Of a stretch of 64,000 nt of DNA, positions 5,620 through 28,082 are shown in pieces. The stretch lies in the sequence record AP018399.1. One strand, 5' to 3'. The notes beneath the pieces were generated by a model. That model did no database searches. It saw only the letters and a program-made list of their open reading frames with translations, and was not told the origin of the DNA. Position numbers and translations under genes: made by a program. Position 1 is the stretch's first letter, and each line of letters begins with the position of its first letter.

Positions 5620-7860
5620 TTAGGTTGGTGTCACGGTTGGGGTAATCGTTGGTGTAGGTGTCATTTCAGGTGTAACTGACGGGGTTACATCAGGTGTAAG
5701 TGACGGAGTTACATCAGGTGTAAGTGACGGAGTTACATCAGGTGTAACTGACGGAGTTACATCAGGTGTAACTGACGGAGTTACATCAGGTGTAACTGAC
5801 GGAGTTACATCAGGTGTAACTGACGGTGTTGGTGAAGGTGTTGGTGTTGGTGCTGGTAGGTTTGGTACCACGAAGGCGACTTCCGTTACCGGACGTGGGC
5901 TTGGGATTACCGCAATAGTTCCAGCCTGAGCAAAACCTGTACTTCCATCGTATGTCAACGCATTCATGACCGTGGCTGTTGGGTTAGTGATATCCAACGC
6001 TAGAACACGGTTGTCGTATGAAGCAATTGAGTTTGGTGACGATACAGCGAACGGCTTGTTGATGGTATCAGACTGTTCAACCGATAGAGCCGAACCACTT
6101 AGAATAATAGACTCAAACGTGGTTGTGGTTGTTGAACCTGTCGGACGGTAAGCAAGCATTAGGATACCAGTCGAGATATCGAACTGGATTGCTGCTAGGT
6201 TGTCCGTAACAGTGTCGTAGTCTAGGGCGTCAGAGAATAGCAAGCCTGAACCCGGAACGTAATTGTAAGCGATTAGTTCATTATCACTTGAAGCGTAGGC
6301 AATGAATGTAGCATCACGGACAGCCAAGTTGTTCGTACCATTCGGGATGTTAATCGGTGCGCCATCAACTGTGAAGCTCGTACCGTTGAACACTAGAACC
6401 GACAACTTATGTGTTGTTGCAACGTCACTTGCCGCAGTTACAACCAAGATTGTGCTGATGCCTAGCGTGTGGATGCCTAGAACGATTTCATCATTGAAGT
6501 CATACGTACCGGCACGAGTGAAGCCCGTTCCGGAGAATGTGTACGCCGACACTTGCGAATTGAAATCGGTTGGAGCGGCGGTAAAGTCGTTGTCACCACT
6601 GTAAACGTATAGTGAGTCCTGCGTCACGTACTGTGGCTTGTAGTCCAGAGTTGATGCATCGACGCTGGCGTAGTTGTATAGACCGACACCAAGGTTCACA
6701 CCGAAGGCCGCAATACCGTTGTCGTTAGCAGCTAGGTATGATGACCCGAACATGCTACCAACACGCGATAGAGTTGGTTCAACGCCAAATAGATTGTCAT
6801 CGTAGAAGGCAGTCTGAGTGAAGGTGTCGAACGTATTGTCCAACTTCAACTTACGCACATAGTACGCTTCACCGTCGTAGCTAACGTCGGCCGGACGTAG
6901 AGCAACAGCGAAGATGCTTCCGTCATTGATAGGAGCCGAAGGTGTGACAGACGGAGTAACCGTAGCCGTTGGAGTTACGGTTGGAGTAGTCGTAGCTGTT
7001 GGAGTTACAGTCTGAGTTGGTGTAACAGTTGGCGTATCGCTCGGAGGCGGTGTATTTGTTGGGGTCGGAGTTACCGACACGCCCGGTGTAGCCGACAACG
7101 TAGGTGTCGGCGTGATTGTAGCCGTAGCCGTCACGGTTACCGTTGGGGTAATCGTTGGGGTGATGGTCACAGTCATTGTTGGAGTTGGTGTCGGTGTTGG
7201 CGAGCCAATCGGAGTCGAGGTAGGAGCCTGTGACGACTGGCAATCAATCGTACCGATATTGGTATTGCTGCGAATACCAATAATCTGGTAATTCACGTAA
7301 CCGTCGTTTAGTCCAATCTGACCTTCAAGGCGATACTGCATTGTAACCTTAGCAACCGGGTCGCTAAAACAATGCATGAAGTCGATTTCAGAAGGGATGC
7401 TGAACGGCGAAACCGTCCAAGTACATTCGTCTAGAGTGAAGTTGTAACCATCCTGACCGATTGGAAGCGGTAGGAACTGGCCGTGGGCGATAACACCCGA
7501 GTTACCGCCAATGTCGTTTATGCTGGAAAGGGCACGCCATGTGCCAATCGAAGTATAAACGAATGGCTTATTCTGGGTCTTGTTGTACCAAATCTGACCG
7601 GTTGTTGGGTTCTCTAGGAGTGTGCCGTAAGCACGAGTCAGGTCAGGATTGCCGGGATTACCCGGTTCTTCCGGGCACGCAAAATGCTCAAGAACATGCA
7701 ATAGGTTCTCGTTAAAGATTTCACCGTACTCTAGACGGGTCTTACCGATTAGAGCAATGTCTAGTTCATCGGTAATAAGGGCCGACTTCTGAATCTGAAT
7801 CGTGCCTTTGTCTAGGTTGGTGTAGTAAATTACGTATGCATTATCTGCGCAGTTAGCCAT
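5620..7860 (-). CDS. Virion fibre/appendage protein, Pro/Thr-linker family paralog 5 (large beta-rich central domain, terminal PT repeats)
   Basis: Conserved N-terminal domain, PT linker, ~360-aa beta-strand-rich domain, C-terminal PSVTPDVT tandem repeats. Confidence 0.7.
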   Translation of the reverse strand: MANCADNAYVIYYTNLDKGTIQIQKSALITDELDIALIGKTRLEYGEIFNENLLHVLEHFACPEEPGNPGNPDLTRAYGTLLENPTTGQIWYNKTQNKPFVYTSIGTWRALSSINDIGGNSGVIAHGQFLPLPIGQDGYNFTLDECTWTVSPFSIPSEIDFMHCFSDPVAKVTMQYRLEGQIGLNDGYVNYQIIGIRSNTNIGTIDCQSSQAPTSTPIGSPTPTPTPTMTVTITPTITPTVTVTATATITPTPTLSATPGVSVTPTPTNTPPPSDTPTVTPTQTVTPTATTTPTVTPTATVTPSVTPSAPINDGSIFAVALRPADVSYDGEAYYVRKLKLDNTFDTFTQTAFYDDNLFGVEPTLSRVGSMFGSSYLAANDNGIAAFGVNLGVGLYNYASVDASTLDYKPQYVTQDSLYVYSGDNDFTAAPTDFNSQVSAYTFSGTGFTRAGTYDFNDEIVLGIHTLGISTILVVTAASDVATTHKLSVLVFNGTSFTVDGAPINIPNGTNNLAVRDATFIAYASSDNELIAYNYVPGSGLLFSDALDYDTVTDNLAAIQFDISTGILMLAYRPTGSTTTTTFESIILSGSALSVEQSDTINKPFAVSSPNSIASYDNRVLALDITNPTATVMNALTYDGSTGFAQAGTIAVIPSPRPVTEVAFVVPNLPAPTPTPSPTPSVTPDVTPSVTPDVTPSVTPDVTPSVTPDVTPSLTPDVTPSLTPDVTPSVTPEMTPTPTITPTVTPT
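5668..5826. repeat. 24-bp coding tandem repeat (6 full + 1 partial copy) encoding PS(V/L)TPDVT
   Basis: Unit aggtgtaa(c/g)tgacgg(a/g)gttacatc repeated head-to-tail from 5668, in frame within the 5620..7860 ORF. Confidence 0.95.
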
Positions 7861-26272: not shown

Positions 26273-26301
26273 ATAATAAACCAACAACATAGACTTGTCA
26301 A
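26273..26301 (-). promoter_or_regulatory. Sigma70 promoter TTGACA-17-TATTAT
   Basis: Consensus -35, 17-nt spacer, 5/6 -10; upstream of the membrane operon. Confidence 0.8.
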
Positions 26302-26308
26302 TAGGGCG

Positions 26309-26350
26309 TAAAAAGAAAGCCCCGAGTCCGCCTAAGCAAACTCGGGGCTT
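26309..26350 (-). terminator. Rho-independent terminator after the structured RNA
   Basis: 11-bp stem AAGCCCCGAGT/ACTCGGGGCTT followed by TCTTTTT. Confidence 0.85.
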
Positions 26351-26354
26351 CCCG

Positions 26355-26592
26355 ACTGTGATGGTGTGCTGTTACGCCAAATGCTCTAAGGGTCTTGGTA
26401 TGCGTTCGACTTATCGTGTGCCACAATTGTCAGCCGTTGAGTCTAGGCTTCGCCCTTCGACCATACATACCAAACTGCGCTTGTCCTTCCCCTCGTGTTC
26501 TACGCCCATCCGCAAGGCACATGCTTTGGGACCGGTTCCACGTCGCAATTCTTTAAAGGATGGCTGCTTCTAAGCCAACCTCCCATCACAGT
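26355..26592 (-). ncRNA. Structured ncRNA mimicking the 23S rRNA GTPase-associated centre (H43/H44, L11 site) with a 170-nt insertion
   Basis: Minus strand reads ACUGUGAUGG-GAGGUUGGCUUAGAAGCAGCCAUCCUUUAAAGAAU-[170 nt]-GCGUAACAGCACA-CCAUCACAGU. The flanks match E. coli 23S 1051-1108 (GCCAGGAUGUUGGCUUAGAAGCAGCCAUCAUUUAAAGAAAGCGUAAUAGCUCACUGGU, recalled) and the ends form a perfect 10-bp closing stem. Confidence 0.85.
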
Positions 26593-26605
26593 TCAGGAGC
26601 GGATA

Positions 26606-27256
26606 TTACCCGAACTTCTTTTGCAAGTCAAGTCGGATGCCGTTGGGCTTGATGGCCTGATGCATCCAGTGTTCGTCAGTCTGAACATGACCCTTGCGGA
26701 CGTACTTCATGACATACTTGTCGAACTCTTCGTACAGGATTTCATCCGCGATTCGCAGAACAGCACCTTCAATCCTTGAAGTATCCAGCGATTCGCAGAT
26801 ATCACGAATCACCTTCTCATCGTAGATTCCATCGTACAGAACCTTGACGTGCGGCATTCCCAGACGGCCTACGCTAACAGTGTAGTCCCAATCATAGCAC
26901 TTGGTACCGTGCCATACGGAGAATACGTAGAAGTACGATTCCAGTTCTTCGTAGACAACCGAATGCTGGGCGTACATATTCTCGCCACAAATTCGGTCAC
27001 CATCCGGAATCATCCAAGCATTTTCCGCCCAAATGCGCTTGACCCAATCACGGCTAGGGTGATGGGCACTATCAATCGAACGGGCATGAATGCCATCCCG
27101 ATACATGGTCGTGTTTTCACCATCCATCTTCTCGGTCAAGATGACACGACGACCGTTGAACTGGTCGGTGGTCTTGATTACTTTGTCGTCCGACTGAACG
27201 CCCGGTGACCACGGCATATGCATGGTCCGGGGGTACTTGAATCGGTTGGCTTTCAT
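26606..27256 (-). CDS. ATP-dependent RNA ligase (single nucleotidyltransferase domain)
   Basis: KYPRTxHxPWSPG, motif I TEKMDGEN, ICGEN, YFYVFSVW, IEGAVLR, KYVR. Confidence 0.88.
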   Translation of the reverse strand: MKANRFKYPRTMHMPWSPGVQSDDKVIKTTDQFNGRRVILTEKMDGENTTMYRDGIHARSIDSAHHPSRDWVKRIWAENAWMIPDGDRICGENMYAQHSVVYEELESYFYVFSVWHGTKCYDWDYTVSVGRLGMPHVKVLYDGIYDEKVIRDICESLDTSRIEGAVLRIADEILYEEFDKYVMKYVRKGHVQTDEHWMHQAIKPNGIRLDLQKKFG

Positions 27257-27285: not shown

Positions 27286-27314
27286 ATTATAACAGCTTAC
27301 GGGTTCCCTTGCAA
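27286..27314 (-). promoter_or_regulatory. Sigma70 promoter TTGCAA-17-TATAAT driving RNA ligase and ncRNA
   Basis: Consensus -10, 17-nt spacer, 4/6 -35; ~30 nt upstream of the ligase ATG (AAGGA SD). Confidence 0.75.
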
Positions 27315-28082
27315 GGCGTAAGTGTTACGCAACTGGAAGATTTGACCAGTGTTAGGGGCCATAGGCTGAACGCCAACAAGGTCTTGGGCAATCAGGCCGG
27401 GGATGATACGGCGATACGTTTCCACATCTAAGCCACCGGCTGACATATCGACAATACCAATCTCGTCTTCATCTGCACCGCCATGTAGAAGCCTGTCGGC
27501 CATATCGTCAACGTCATCGCAGACGATAACGAAACGAGCGCCGTTGTAGATTTTGGTCATGCGACGAAGTGGCACAGTGTCATCGGTCAATGACTGATAT
27601 GTCTGCTGGCCTAGCACATACTCTCTACGCTGCCCAACTCTTGCGCGACAAATATGCATCAATTCGAATAGATGCTCTTCGGTATTTCGGTCCGGAATGT
27701 CAAAAATGTATACGTCGCTAGTCAAAGCGCCTCGCATATACTCCGGTCGCAGGATTGATTCAATGGATTCAACTTCAAGGGTGTTATAGTCTGCCTTGAA
27801 TACTCCACGAGCCTTCTTGCAATGCCCCAAGTCTTGGAACATTCTATCAACAGCGTACTTACTATGGACACCAAAAGTAATTTCAATAGGGTCTTCGGAA
27901 TACAAGAACTCCCATTCTGCGTAGTTGCTCAGGGCTGTAGTGATACCATGCATACGCTTATATGGAATAAGCGTGAATTGGCAGCTATCCATCGCATTGA
28001 TGATGTTCTGCTGAGTCTTGGTCGGGAATCGTCCTGTCTTATCCAAGAAGAACGTAGTGGGGTCAATTTTAAAGTGTGCCAT
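27297..28082 (-). CDS. Hypothetical protein ending in a copy of a major-capsid-protein motif
   Basis: C-terminal RRIIPGLIAQDLVGVQPM vs MCP RRIIPGTIATELVGVQPM. Confidence 0.7.
   Translation of the reverse strand: MAHFKIDPTTFFLDKTGRFPTKTQQNIINAMDSCQFTLIPYKRMHGITTALSNYAEWEFLYSEDPIEITFGVHSKYAVDRMFQDLGHCKKARGVFKADYNTLEVESIESILRPEYMRGALTSDVYIFDIPDRNTEEHLFELMHICRARVGQRREYVLGQQTYQSLTDDTVPLRRMTKIYNGARFVIVCDDVDDMADRLLHGGADEDEIGIVDMSAGGLDVETYRRIIPGLIAQDLVGVQPMAPNTGQIFQLRNTYALQGNP

Follow-up and report, generated by a model that had tools for sequence, protein, structure and literature searches.

The stretch of DNA analysed here (the window, 64,000 nucleotides) is part of the Xanthomonas jumbo phage XacN1 (AP018399.1; 100% identity). 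On its minus strand, directly downstream of the RNA ligase gene ORF260, lies a gap at 26355-26592 which reads as a non-coding RNA (ncRNA) resembling the GTPase-associated centre (GAC) of 23S ribosomal RNA (rRNA), the 'thiostrepton loop' formed by helices H42-H44 (nucleotides 1051-1108). An initial annotation, made from the letters of the window, had described the minus strand of this gap as a mimic of H43/H44 whose ends form a perfect 10-bp stem, and had seen no credible open reading frame (ORF) in it. This description was exact. The ends ACUGUGAUGG (26583-26592) and CCAUCACAGU (26355-26364) are perfect complements, the gap holds mechanical ORFs only, and GenBank annotates nothing there. Read from 26592 to 26355, the order is ACUGUGAUGG, GAGGUUGGCUUAGAAGCAGCCAUCCUUUAAAGAAU, a 166-nt stretch, UUUG, GCGUAACAGCACA and CCAUCACAGU, which corresponds to a closing stem, an H43-like hairpin, the junction UUUAAAGAAU, a 166-nt insert, a UUUG linker, an H44-like hairpin and again the closing stem. 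The parts are listed below, with GAC positions in 23S rRNA numbering.

26355-26592, minus strand: whole GAC-like ncRNA core from closing stem to closing stem, 238 nt
26583-26592, minus strand: 5' strand of the closing stem, ACUGUGAUGG, equal to the top of H42, with G1054 and G1055 included
26557-26581, minus strand: H43-like hairpin (1057-1081) with loop UUAGAAGCA, holding A1067, U1060 and C1072
26548-26556, minus strand: junction UUAAAGAAU (1082-1090), holding the tertiary partners U1082-A1086 and A1088, and also U1090
26382-26547, minus strand: inserted domain X, 166 nt, bounded by helix X1
26378-26381, minus strand: linker UUUG from helix X1 to H44
26365-26377, minus strand: H44-like hairpin GCGUAACAGC (1091-1100, A1095 kept), then A1101-C1102-A1103
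26355-26364, minus strand: 3' strand of the closing stem, CCAUCACAGU, from C1104 onward

All pairs of the GAC three-way junction are present in XacN1 (closing helix 1051-1055/1104-1108, H43 1057-1081, H44 1090-1101). The compensatory pairs pointed out initially are real, namely G1058-C1080, U1090-A1101 and a changed closing stem that still pairs. The tertiary triple reads C1072/C1092-G1099. No Rfam family reached its gathering threshold anywhere in the window. In a permissive Rfam scan of a 451-nt stretch, 26534-26584, that is H43 and the junction, aligned to positions 1095-1146 of LSU_rRNA_bacteria with 19.2 bits (E=7e-4), against a gathering score of 50. Apart from this sub-threshold match no rRNA sequence flanks the element, again as first described, and the 58-nt domain is not uninterrupted, the 166-nt insert lying between 1090 and 1091.

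A family of GAC-like RNAs in large phages

The same architecture was found in about 70 IMG/VR viral contigs and in more than 40 sequenced phages. BLAST against sequenced phages placed an H43-like segment in gaps of the Pseudomonas phages Astolliot, Milchi and pf16, Aeromonas phage 4_4572 and Acinetobacter phage ME3, and each of these copies has the closing stem, H43, UUUAAAGAGU, an insert, UUUG, H44 and the closing stem. Further BLAST searches added XaC1, RSP15, UNO-G1W1, 15 Lak megaphage records and the GAP32 group (GAP32, XbC2, Kaldavass, CBB, Serratia BF, six Erwinia pEa_SNUABM phages and Yersinia fHe-Yen9-03/04), where full-length matches lie at about 284-289 kb of the record, Kaldavass excepted. 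When IMG/VR was scanned by sequence pattern, the 3' motif of the XacN1 type matched at 11 loci and AGCCATCNTTTAAAGAGTKG at 70; many of the carriers are contigs of 100-540 kb. Phage records have no annotation over the element, except for Milchi and Kaldavass. When 185,579 species of cellular genomes were scanned with the 3' motif of the commonest insert type (type A, see below), we found one true copy, on an 8-kb contig of a metagenome-assembled genome with a transfer RNA (tRNA), while nine others were chance matches in coding genes. Covarying homologues exist in dozens of unrelated phage genomes, and an assembly chimera does not explain them, since independent assemblies of dozens of phages with different hosts carry the RNA.

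We extracted 57 non-identical copies, counted bases in 56 of them and aligned the core of 48 sequences with the interior of the insert cut out. In this alignment, 94.7% of the cells of the GAC secondary structure and helix X1 were paired, compared to 73.7% in column shuffles. The covariation score was 0.539, whereas shuffled alignments gave 0.151 (0 of 500 shuffles reached the observed value) and slid partners gave 0.09-0.14. The closing stem is unconstrained in sequence across the family, yet it pairs in 90% of the cells, with six pair types at 8 of its 9 positions. The pair 1058-1080 was G-C in 20 sequences, U-A in 17, A-U in 8, C-G in one and G.U in one, with one mismatch, and the 56-copy count agrees with this.

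The tertiary contacts covary as well. The triple 1072/1092-1099 was C/C-G in 33 copies, U/U-A in 15 and U/U.G in 9, with no discordant copy, and position 1072 was not covered by the search pattern. Conn, Gutell and Draper (1998) reportedly inferred the triple from the same covariation in rRNAs. The contact of C1072/C1092 with G1099 is documented in the E. coli GAC (PMC2952862). The tertiary pair U1060-A1088 does not vary, and 54 of the 56 copies have G1071; U1082-A1086 is flipped to A-U in two loci (L012 in the alignment and L013 read directly; we number loci with an L). A point against taking such constancy at face value is that the scan constrained 1073-1090, so the invariance there in the 56-copy set is partly an ascertainment artefact; the loci found with the 3' motif do vary in this segment. 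A covariance model of the phage core recognises H42-H44 in genuine 23S rRNA of Salmonella and E. coli, with 48.8 bits, and in the window it has a single match. Across long inserts it mostly recovers the 5' half alone, with 35-50 bits. By these comparative data, the element is a functional RNA adopting the GAC tertiary fold. The initial proposal of a structural mimic under selection, and not a captured scrap of rRNA, is thus borne out across the family, down to the C1072/(C1092-G1099) triple.

The bases exposed on the loops behave differently. In rRNA these bases (1067 and the 1095 region) contact EF-G, the tRNA elbow and thiostrepton. At position 1067, 35 copies have A, 20 have G and one has U. 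Position 1095 is mostly A, with C, U and G also found, and the H44 loop occurs as GUAACA, GUAAUA, GUAGUA, GUCAUA, GUUAAA and others. The factor-facing bases 1067 and 1095-1097 are relaxed while the core is kept. The retention of A1067 and A1095, which the initial annotation had noted, is therefore true of XacN1 and not general in the family. EF-G, EF-Tu or thiostrepton thereby become less plausible as the conserved ligand, and attention shifts to the fold and to protein uL11; since 1067 and 1095-1097 vary and the core does not, the conserved ligand is probably no translation factor.

Two divergent forms were also seen. L013 (3150-3429), which has the A1082-U1086 swap, carries an extra hairpin of about 36 nt between the H43 3' strand and the junction (after A1077). 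In the Lak phages L092/L093 (about 1480-1560 and 1870-1900), a divergent GAC has the H43 stem GGG/CCC, the loop AGUAGAGUU and the H44 GCCGAGUAAAGGAC; the junction UUUAAAGAGU and helix X1 are retained, and the family model gives only 29-37 bits.

All copies share U1090-A1101 (or U.G) and the ending ...AGCACAC, unlike the rRNA hits. By these signatures, the family is a separate lineage of long standing, and recent captures from hosts do not account for it. In 20 loci no Rfam 15 family lay over the elements, and only tRNAs, one transfer-messenger RNA (tmRNA) and one GOLLD were reported. A description of GAC-like phage RNAs was not found in the literature either. As far as the literature and Rfam searches reach, the class was undescribed before, which agrees with the statement made initially that no phage ncRNA of this kind was known.

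Synteny with the RNA ligase, as in XacN1, did not prove general: of about 95 other loci, only 2 have a ligase homologue nearby, and the usual neighbourhood is a tRNA array. A tRNA gene lies at most 300 nt from 36 of the 57 copies, often just 7-20 nt away, and the nearest tRNA was on the same strand in all 46 loci where one was found. Because of this proximity and shared orientation, the GAC-like RNAs would almost certainly be made and trimmed within tRNA precursors. Stand-alone versions occur in XacN1, the GAP32 group and RSP15, the last with a consensus promoter. All-against-all clustering of 1,275 neighbouring ORFs gave no protein family common to diverse loci, only clade-restricted families and homing-endonuclease-like proteins. 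A tblastn search for a phage uL11 gene matched one Microcystis phage and otherwise just bacterial contaminant records, and no carrier of the RNA was among these. Since there is neither a conserved neighbour family nor a uL11 gene in the carrier phages, any protein partner must be host-encoded.

Other RNAs were observed in the same arrays. A GOLLD RNA (RF02032, 236.7 bits) lies at 1359-1772 of L052, in the tRNA array that holds the GAC-like RNA at 7174-7325. Phage tmRNA genes share the array in L089 (1661-1968) and in L012 (about 140 nt from the element). Matches to the tRNA model of 117-120 nt, overlong for a tRNA, were found in L035 (5356-5474, 7723-7842 and 7858-7976) and L005 (4859-4975), and these may be intron-containing or otherwise interrupted tRNA genes.

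The inserted domain X

The 166-nt insertion is not incidental, as a domain sits at exactly the same site in every family member. In every copy helix X1 leaves between 1090 and 1091 and is followed by a linker, UUUG in 49, CUUG in 4 and UUUA in 3 of the 56 copies. In XacN1, X1 pairs UGC (26545-26547) with GCA (26382-26384) and is extended by tandem G.A pairs. Its three basal pairs covary across the family (UGC/GCA, GUC/GAC, UCC/GGA, UUC/GAA, GGG/CCC, GGAG/CUCC). The inserts measure 45-360 nt, belong to several unrelated types and contain no ORFs. The IMG/VR scan returned no copy lacking the insert, and among phage records the contiguous matches were true rRNA contaminants only.

The XacN1 insert is of type A, also found in ME3, RSP15, the GAP32 group, XaC1, Astolliot and Lak. 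RNAalifold applied to nine diverse type-A members predicted 52 pairs, 37 of them with compensatory changes. The consensus fold includes helix X3 (AGGG/CCCU) and a conserved 14-nt bulge, AAGGACAAGYRCAG. In XacN1 the predicted elements are as follows.

26494-26542, minus strand: X2 hairpin domain with stem CGUG/CACG, containing UGUGCC (26516-26521)
26489-26493 with 26389-26392, minus strand: helix X3, AGGGG with CCCU
26475-26488, minus strand: conserved 14-nt bulge AAGGACAAGCGCAG between X3 and X4
26466-26474, minus strand: 5' strand of helix X4, UUUGGUAUG, pairing with CAUACCAAG (26394-26402); 9 bp, 8 of them with compensatory changes
26446-26455, minus strand: X5 mini-hairpin GGGCGAAGCC (GGC-GAA-GCC)
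26407-26436, minus strand: X6 hairpin with loop GGCACA (26417-26422), complementary to UGUGCC of X2

The X2 and X6 loops are complementary in four lineages with different sequences, AUCCC/GGGAU in most members, ACUCCCA/UGGGAGU in RSP15, CACCAC/GUGGUG in the GAP32 group and UGUGCC/GGCACA in XacN1. Because the complementary pair changes its sequence at the same loops, and for this reason only, we propose a likely kissing contact between X2 and X6; in single-sequence shuffle tests the pairing was not significant, with 32 to 465 of 500 shuffles equalling it. Astolliot-like phages carry tandem GAC-like RNAs with differing insert types, A followed by B or by a short one (L003 at 2160-2490 and 2500-2675, L006 at 47-124/389-553, and L010).

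Some inserts contain rRNA-like pieces. In eleven Lak-like contigs X is about 350 nt long and holds the hairpin UUCCA-AU-AGUACGAGAGGAGC-C-UGGAA, which resembles the sarcin-ricin loop (SRL) of 23S rRNA.

Contigs with the SRL hairpin: L029 (about 7100-7130), L030, L031, L033, L035, L039, L050, L058, L064, L069 and L082

The exact SRL core AGUACGAGAGGA, a 12-13 nt match to 23S rRNA, is present in 8 of the 11; in the other three, L035, L064 and L082, it is AGUACGGGAGGA. There is covariation in the stems (UUCCA/UGGAA, GUGCA/UGCAC, UUGCA/UGCAA). A degenerate form, AUUACGAGAGGA(C/A), without the bulged G, occurs in L044 and in the Lak phages L092/L093 (Lak-B3/A2, about 1750-1780). The SRL match does not reach significance in any single sequence; the hairpin context and the conservation make an SRL copy in Lak-like X domains credible. 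The XacN1 insert has no SRL hairpin (AGUA/GA bulged-G motif with GAGA tetraloop). In the insert of L089 (4114-4314), four segments of 10-13 nt are identical to E. coli rRNA, namely to 16S 1360-1372 and to 23S 76-85, 1300-1310 and 1466-1478 (0 of 2000 shuffles), and this insert resembles a mosaic of rRNA-like pieces. Once the SRL clade and L089 were removed, sense matches of the remaining inserts to E. coli rRNA stayed at the antisense and shuffle background. In L029, L033 and L039, GGUGCAAGCAUUAAUC (insert 105-120) matches 16S 541-556 in 15 of 16 positions, at the place of the conserved type-A bulge; this match is borderline (E 0.08) and may be due to chance.

Proposed function and competing readings

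The explanation we consider most likely, giving it about even weight, is that the RNA would be an off-ribosome mimic of the stalk base which captures host uL11, as a decoy or as a handle; here we infer its transcription, the binding of uL11 and the downstream effect. Host uL11 is the most probable ligand because the core is strictly conserved, the factor-facing bases are relaxed and there is no phage gene for a partner. The analysis shows a gene-like anatomy, a family of copies, covariation at the secondary and the tertiary level and a setting in tRNA arrays; on this footing we propose the following course. The locus would be a gene for a stable ncRNA whose outer parts form a stand-alone GAC copy (H42 top, H43 and H44 with the native tertiary contacts), and from between 1090 and 1091 a separately folded 166-nt domain X would project. 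As a member of a phage-restricted family, it would belong to RNAs that are normally produced and processed alongside phage tRNAs. The GAC part would capture host uL11 off the ribosome. The resulting RNA-uL11 particle would be nuclease-resistant, would imitate the stalk base and would bear the lineage-specific X, with the SRL copy in Lak-like contigs. It could then act on the host factor-binding centre, either by titrating uL11 or GAC-binding proteins or by diverting GAC- or SRL-directed enzymes from ribosomes; each of these downstream mechanisms, which we likewise infer, is improbable when taken singly.

Several observations weigh against uL11 capture. The insert breaks the 5' strand of H44 between U1090 and G1091, with possible disturbance of the L11 site. 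Given how diverse X is, the adaptive function may reside in X and not in the capture of uL11. Most uL11 is bound to ribosomes, and a sponge effect would hinge on the abundance of the RNA. The XacN1 copy is itself atypical, with no tRNA nearby and a promoter match of only 9/12. Its folding energy as a single sequence is unremarkable (z = -1.27), and the case for the element therefore rests on the comparison across sequences.

A rather doubtful, wider version of uL11 capture is a natural 'ribosome-in-pieces'. In it, a soluble stalk-base RNA, probably with host uL11 and joined to the SRL in Lak-like contigs, would be made beside tRNAs. It would sequester translational GTPases or RelA or activate them wrongly, or it would neutralise toxins of immune systems or competitors that are aimed at the GTPase centre, and X would serve as a payload that can be swapped. 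Such an RNA would represent a new class of host takeover or counter-defence based on RNA.

Among the alternatives, the one that survives best, although we judge it unlikely, is a toxin decoy. The RNA, with or without uL11, would bait or inhibit host or competitor enzymes that attack the factor-binding centre (ADP-ribosyltransferases on H44, RNases or N-glycosidases on the SRL), as part of an 'anti-defence' island of tRNAs. We know of no anti-phage system that targets the GAC, and the bases such toxins would recognise (1095-1097 and 1067) vary across the family. A decoy substrate would also protect poorly against a catalytic toxin unless it bound tightly, and XacN1 is without the SRL hairpin. 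On the other hand, the co-location with tRNA arrays, the exact SRL hairpin joined to the GAC-like RNA in Lak-like contigs and the several rRNA-identical segments in X of L089 all fit a decoy. Suitable toxins exist: the bacterial toxin Tre23 ADP-ribosylates H44 of the GAC (nt 1095-1098), and VapC and MazF toxins that cleave 23S rRNA are known (PMC8661411).

A trap for translation factors or the stringent response is less probable again. Here the mimic would bind translational GTPases or RelA, or strip uL11 from ribosomes, and so blunt the RelA activation that the flood of phage tRNAs and the amino-acid drain would otherwise trigger. RelA activation requires uL11, and a presumed co-expression with the tRNA array fits a link to uncharged tRNA. 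The GAC and the SRL, carried on one RNA in Lak-like contigs, together make up the factor-binding site (PMC8661411). The base counts speak against such a trap: 1067 is G in 20 of the 56 copies, including most SRL-bearing ones, and the H44 loop varies, so the canonical contacts with EF-G, EF-Tu and the tRNA elbow are not conserved. In addition, the Lak copies have another base where the SRL has its bulged G (AUUACGAGAGGA).

About equally improbable is a pure scaffold, in which the GAC fold would be a compact, nuclease-resistant holder for a functional X, similar to tRNA scaffolds, and uL11 would be irrelevant. X differs wholly between lineages while the scaffold is constant, tandem copies in one phage have different X types (Astolliot, L006, L010), and X appears to have a conserved tertiary fold of its own. 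However, many simpler scaffolds exist, and the precise rRNA sequence is kept at the uL11-contacting and tertiary positions, beyond what a generic stable fold needs.

The RNA is very unlikely to be an intron-bearing mini-gene from which X is spliced out to leave a continuous GAC mini-RNA of about 70 nt. Excision of UGCGAC...CAUUUG would restore an uninterrupted H44 with U1090-A1101, the last base of the 5' 'exon' is U, and that of X is usually G. Against this, the last base of X is A in 3 of the 56 copies, X can be as short as 45 nt, and neither the phage nor the IMG/VR collection contains a 'spliced' copy. The UUUG linker and the covarying basal helix are common to unrelated X types, as expected of a structural junction. 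There was no Rfam match to group I or II introns even at E up to 10, and reading the sequence gave neither internal guide sequence/P1 pairing nor a conserved P7; the P7-like GACU/AGUC of XacN1 is not kept in homologues. A group I intron was rejected on these grounds. Finally, a captured rRNA fragment, a chimera with host rRNA or a structure in the 3' untranslated region of the ligase mRNA can be effectively excluded, even though bacterial rRNA matches the 36-nt H43 segment with an identity above 90% and the XacN1 RNA directly follows an ORF, since the dozens of independently assembled phages show compensatory changes and a signature (U1090-A1101, ...AGCACAC) unseen in rRNA hits, in tRNA arrays and not at ligase 3' ends.

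Compared with the GAC of 23S rRNA, the phage RNA has the same secondary structure, a nearly identical H43 stem, junction and H44 stem, the same tertiary partners (U1060-A1088, U1082-A1086, G1071/G1091 and C1072/C1092-G1099) and the same kind of covariation at the triple. It differs in being free-standing, phage-encoded and about 240-500 nt long, in always having the extra domain and the UUUG linker between 1090 and 1091, in the flip of 1090-1101 to U-A, and in the loop bases touching factors and thiostrepton, which the family does not conserve. Autoregulatory leaders of ribosomal proteins (the L10 leader and the L1, S8 and S15 sites) likewise imitate a protein-binding site of rRNA off the ribosome. 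They are cis-acting 5' untranslated regions of bacteria and usually loose mimics, whereas the phage RNA is a near-exact copy in tRNA arrays with no ribosomal protein gene downstream. To our knowledge no such leader mimics the uL11 site. We rejected this identity, as the neighbours are tRNAs, hypothetical proteins or the RNA ligase and the XacN1 copy is followed by a terminator.

With GOLLD, ROOL and the phage tmRNA and tRNA genes the RNA shares its genomic niche (GOLLD in the L052 array), but it has no sequence or structure similarity to GOLLD and ROOL and no Rfam match, and for part of it, unlike for these two, the model that it copies can be named, the GAC. Synthetic 'ribosome-in-pieces' oligonucleotides, the 58-nt GAC and 27-nt SRL RNAs, have been used to bind L11, thiostrepton, EF-G and ribotoxins. 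They represent the same minimal domains, which Lak-like members combine on one molecule; the phage RNA is natural, evolved and equipped with extra domains. Phage tRNAs that replace cleaved host tRNAs are a related precedent of mimicry, and pseudo-ToxI of phage PhiTE is a precedent for a phage RNA decoy (PMC3475682). As in these cases, a phage RNA imitates an RNA of the host or of a defence system; the difference is that the imitated molecule is an rRNA domain.

If the RNA is expressed and binds uL11, it would be, as far as our searches reach, the first viral copy of a functional rRNA centre as a separate molecule, and, if this is true, a third type of translation-related RNA in phage tRNA arrays besides tRNAs and tmRNA. 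For a classic model of RNA tertiary folding, the family supplies natural sequence variants, those of the 1072/1092/1099 triple among them, and it indicates that the GAC can accommodate an entire domain within H44. The family would also point to unknown activities of hosts or competitors aimed at the GAC and the SRL. Gaps of 200-500 nt in dozens of jumbo-phage genomes can now be assigned to one RNA gene family (XacN1, XaC1, XbC2, GAP32, CBB, BF, the Erwinia pEa_SNUABM phages, fHe-Yen9-04, RSP15, ME3, pf16, Astolliot and Lak).

Transcription signals and neighbouring genes in XacN1

The following features surround the element.

26606-27256, minus strand: ORF260, a protein of 216 aa with an ATP-dependent RNA ligase domain, directly upstream of the ncRNA
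26603-26631, minus strand: promoter-like site TTGACT-17-TAATAT, a weak consensus match only (9/12)
26313-26354, minus strand: intrinsic terminator with an 11-bp GC-rich stem (AAGCCCCGAGU/ACUCGGGGCUU), a 12-nt loop and a U-tract

The promoter-like site overlaps the stop codon of the RNA ligase, and the start predicted from it lies 2-6 nt ahead of the closing stem. Terminator-like small RNA models matched 26313-26354 in the Rfam scan; the terminator-finding tool, limited to 8-nt loops, saw only the inner 5-bp piece. Since a promoter-like site lies upstream, a strong hairpin with a U-tract comes right after the element and a near-consensus promoter, presumably that of ORF259, follows, the XacN1 element looks like a small transcription unit of its own.

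ORF260 matches Pfam RNA_ligase (PF09414, 6e-26) and is named "2'-5' RNA ligase" in GenBank. PF09414 is the ATP-dependent nucleotidyltransferase domain of the Rnl2/DraRnl type, and the GenBank name is probably wrong. Immediately past the terminator, at 26273-26301 on the minus strand, there is a near-consensus sigma-70 promoter, TTGACA-17-TATTAT (11/12), which presumably serves ORF259 (396 aa, without a Pfam match). In ORF261 (261 aa, 27297-28082, minus strand), the last 34 residues match the N-terminal part of the Pfam major capsid protein Gp23 (33 bits), which is odd for a protein of this size and position.

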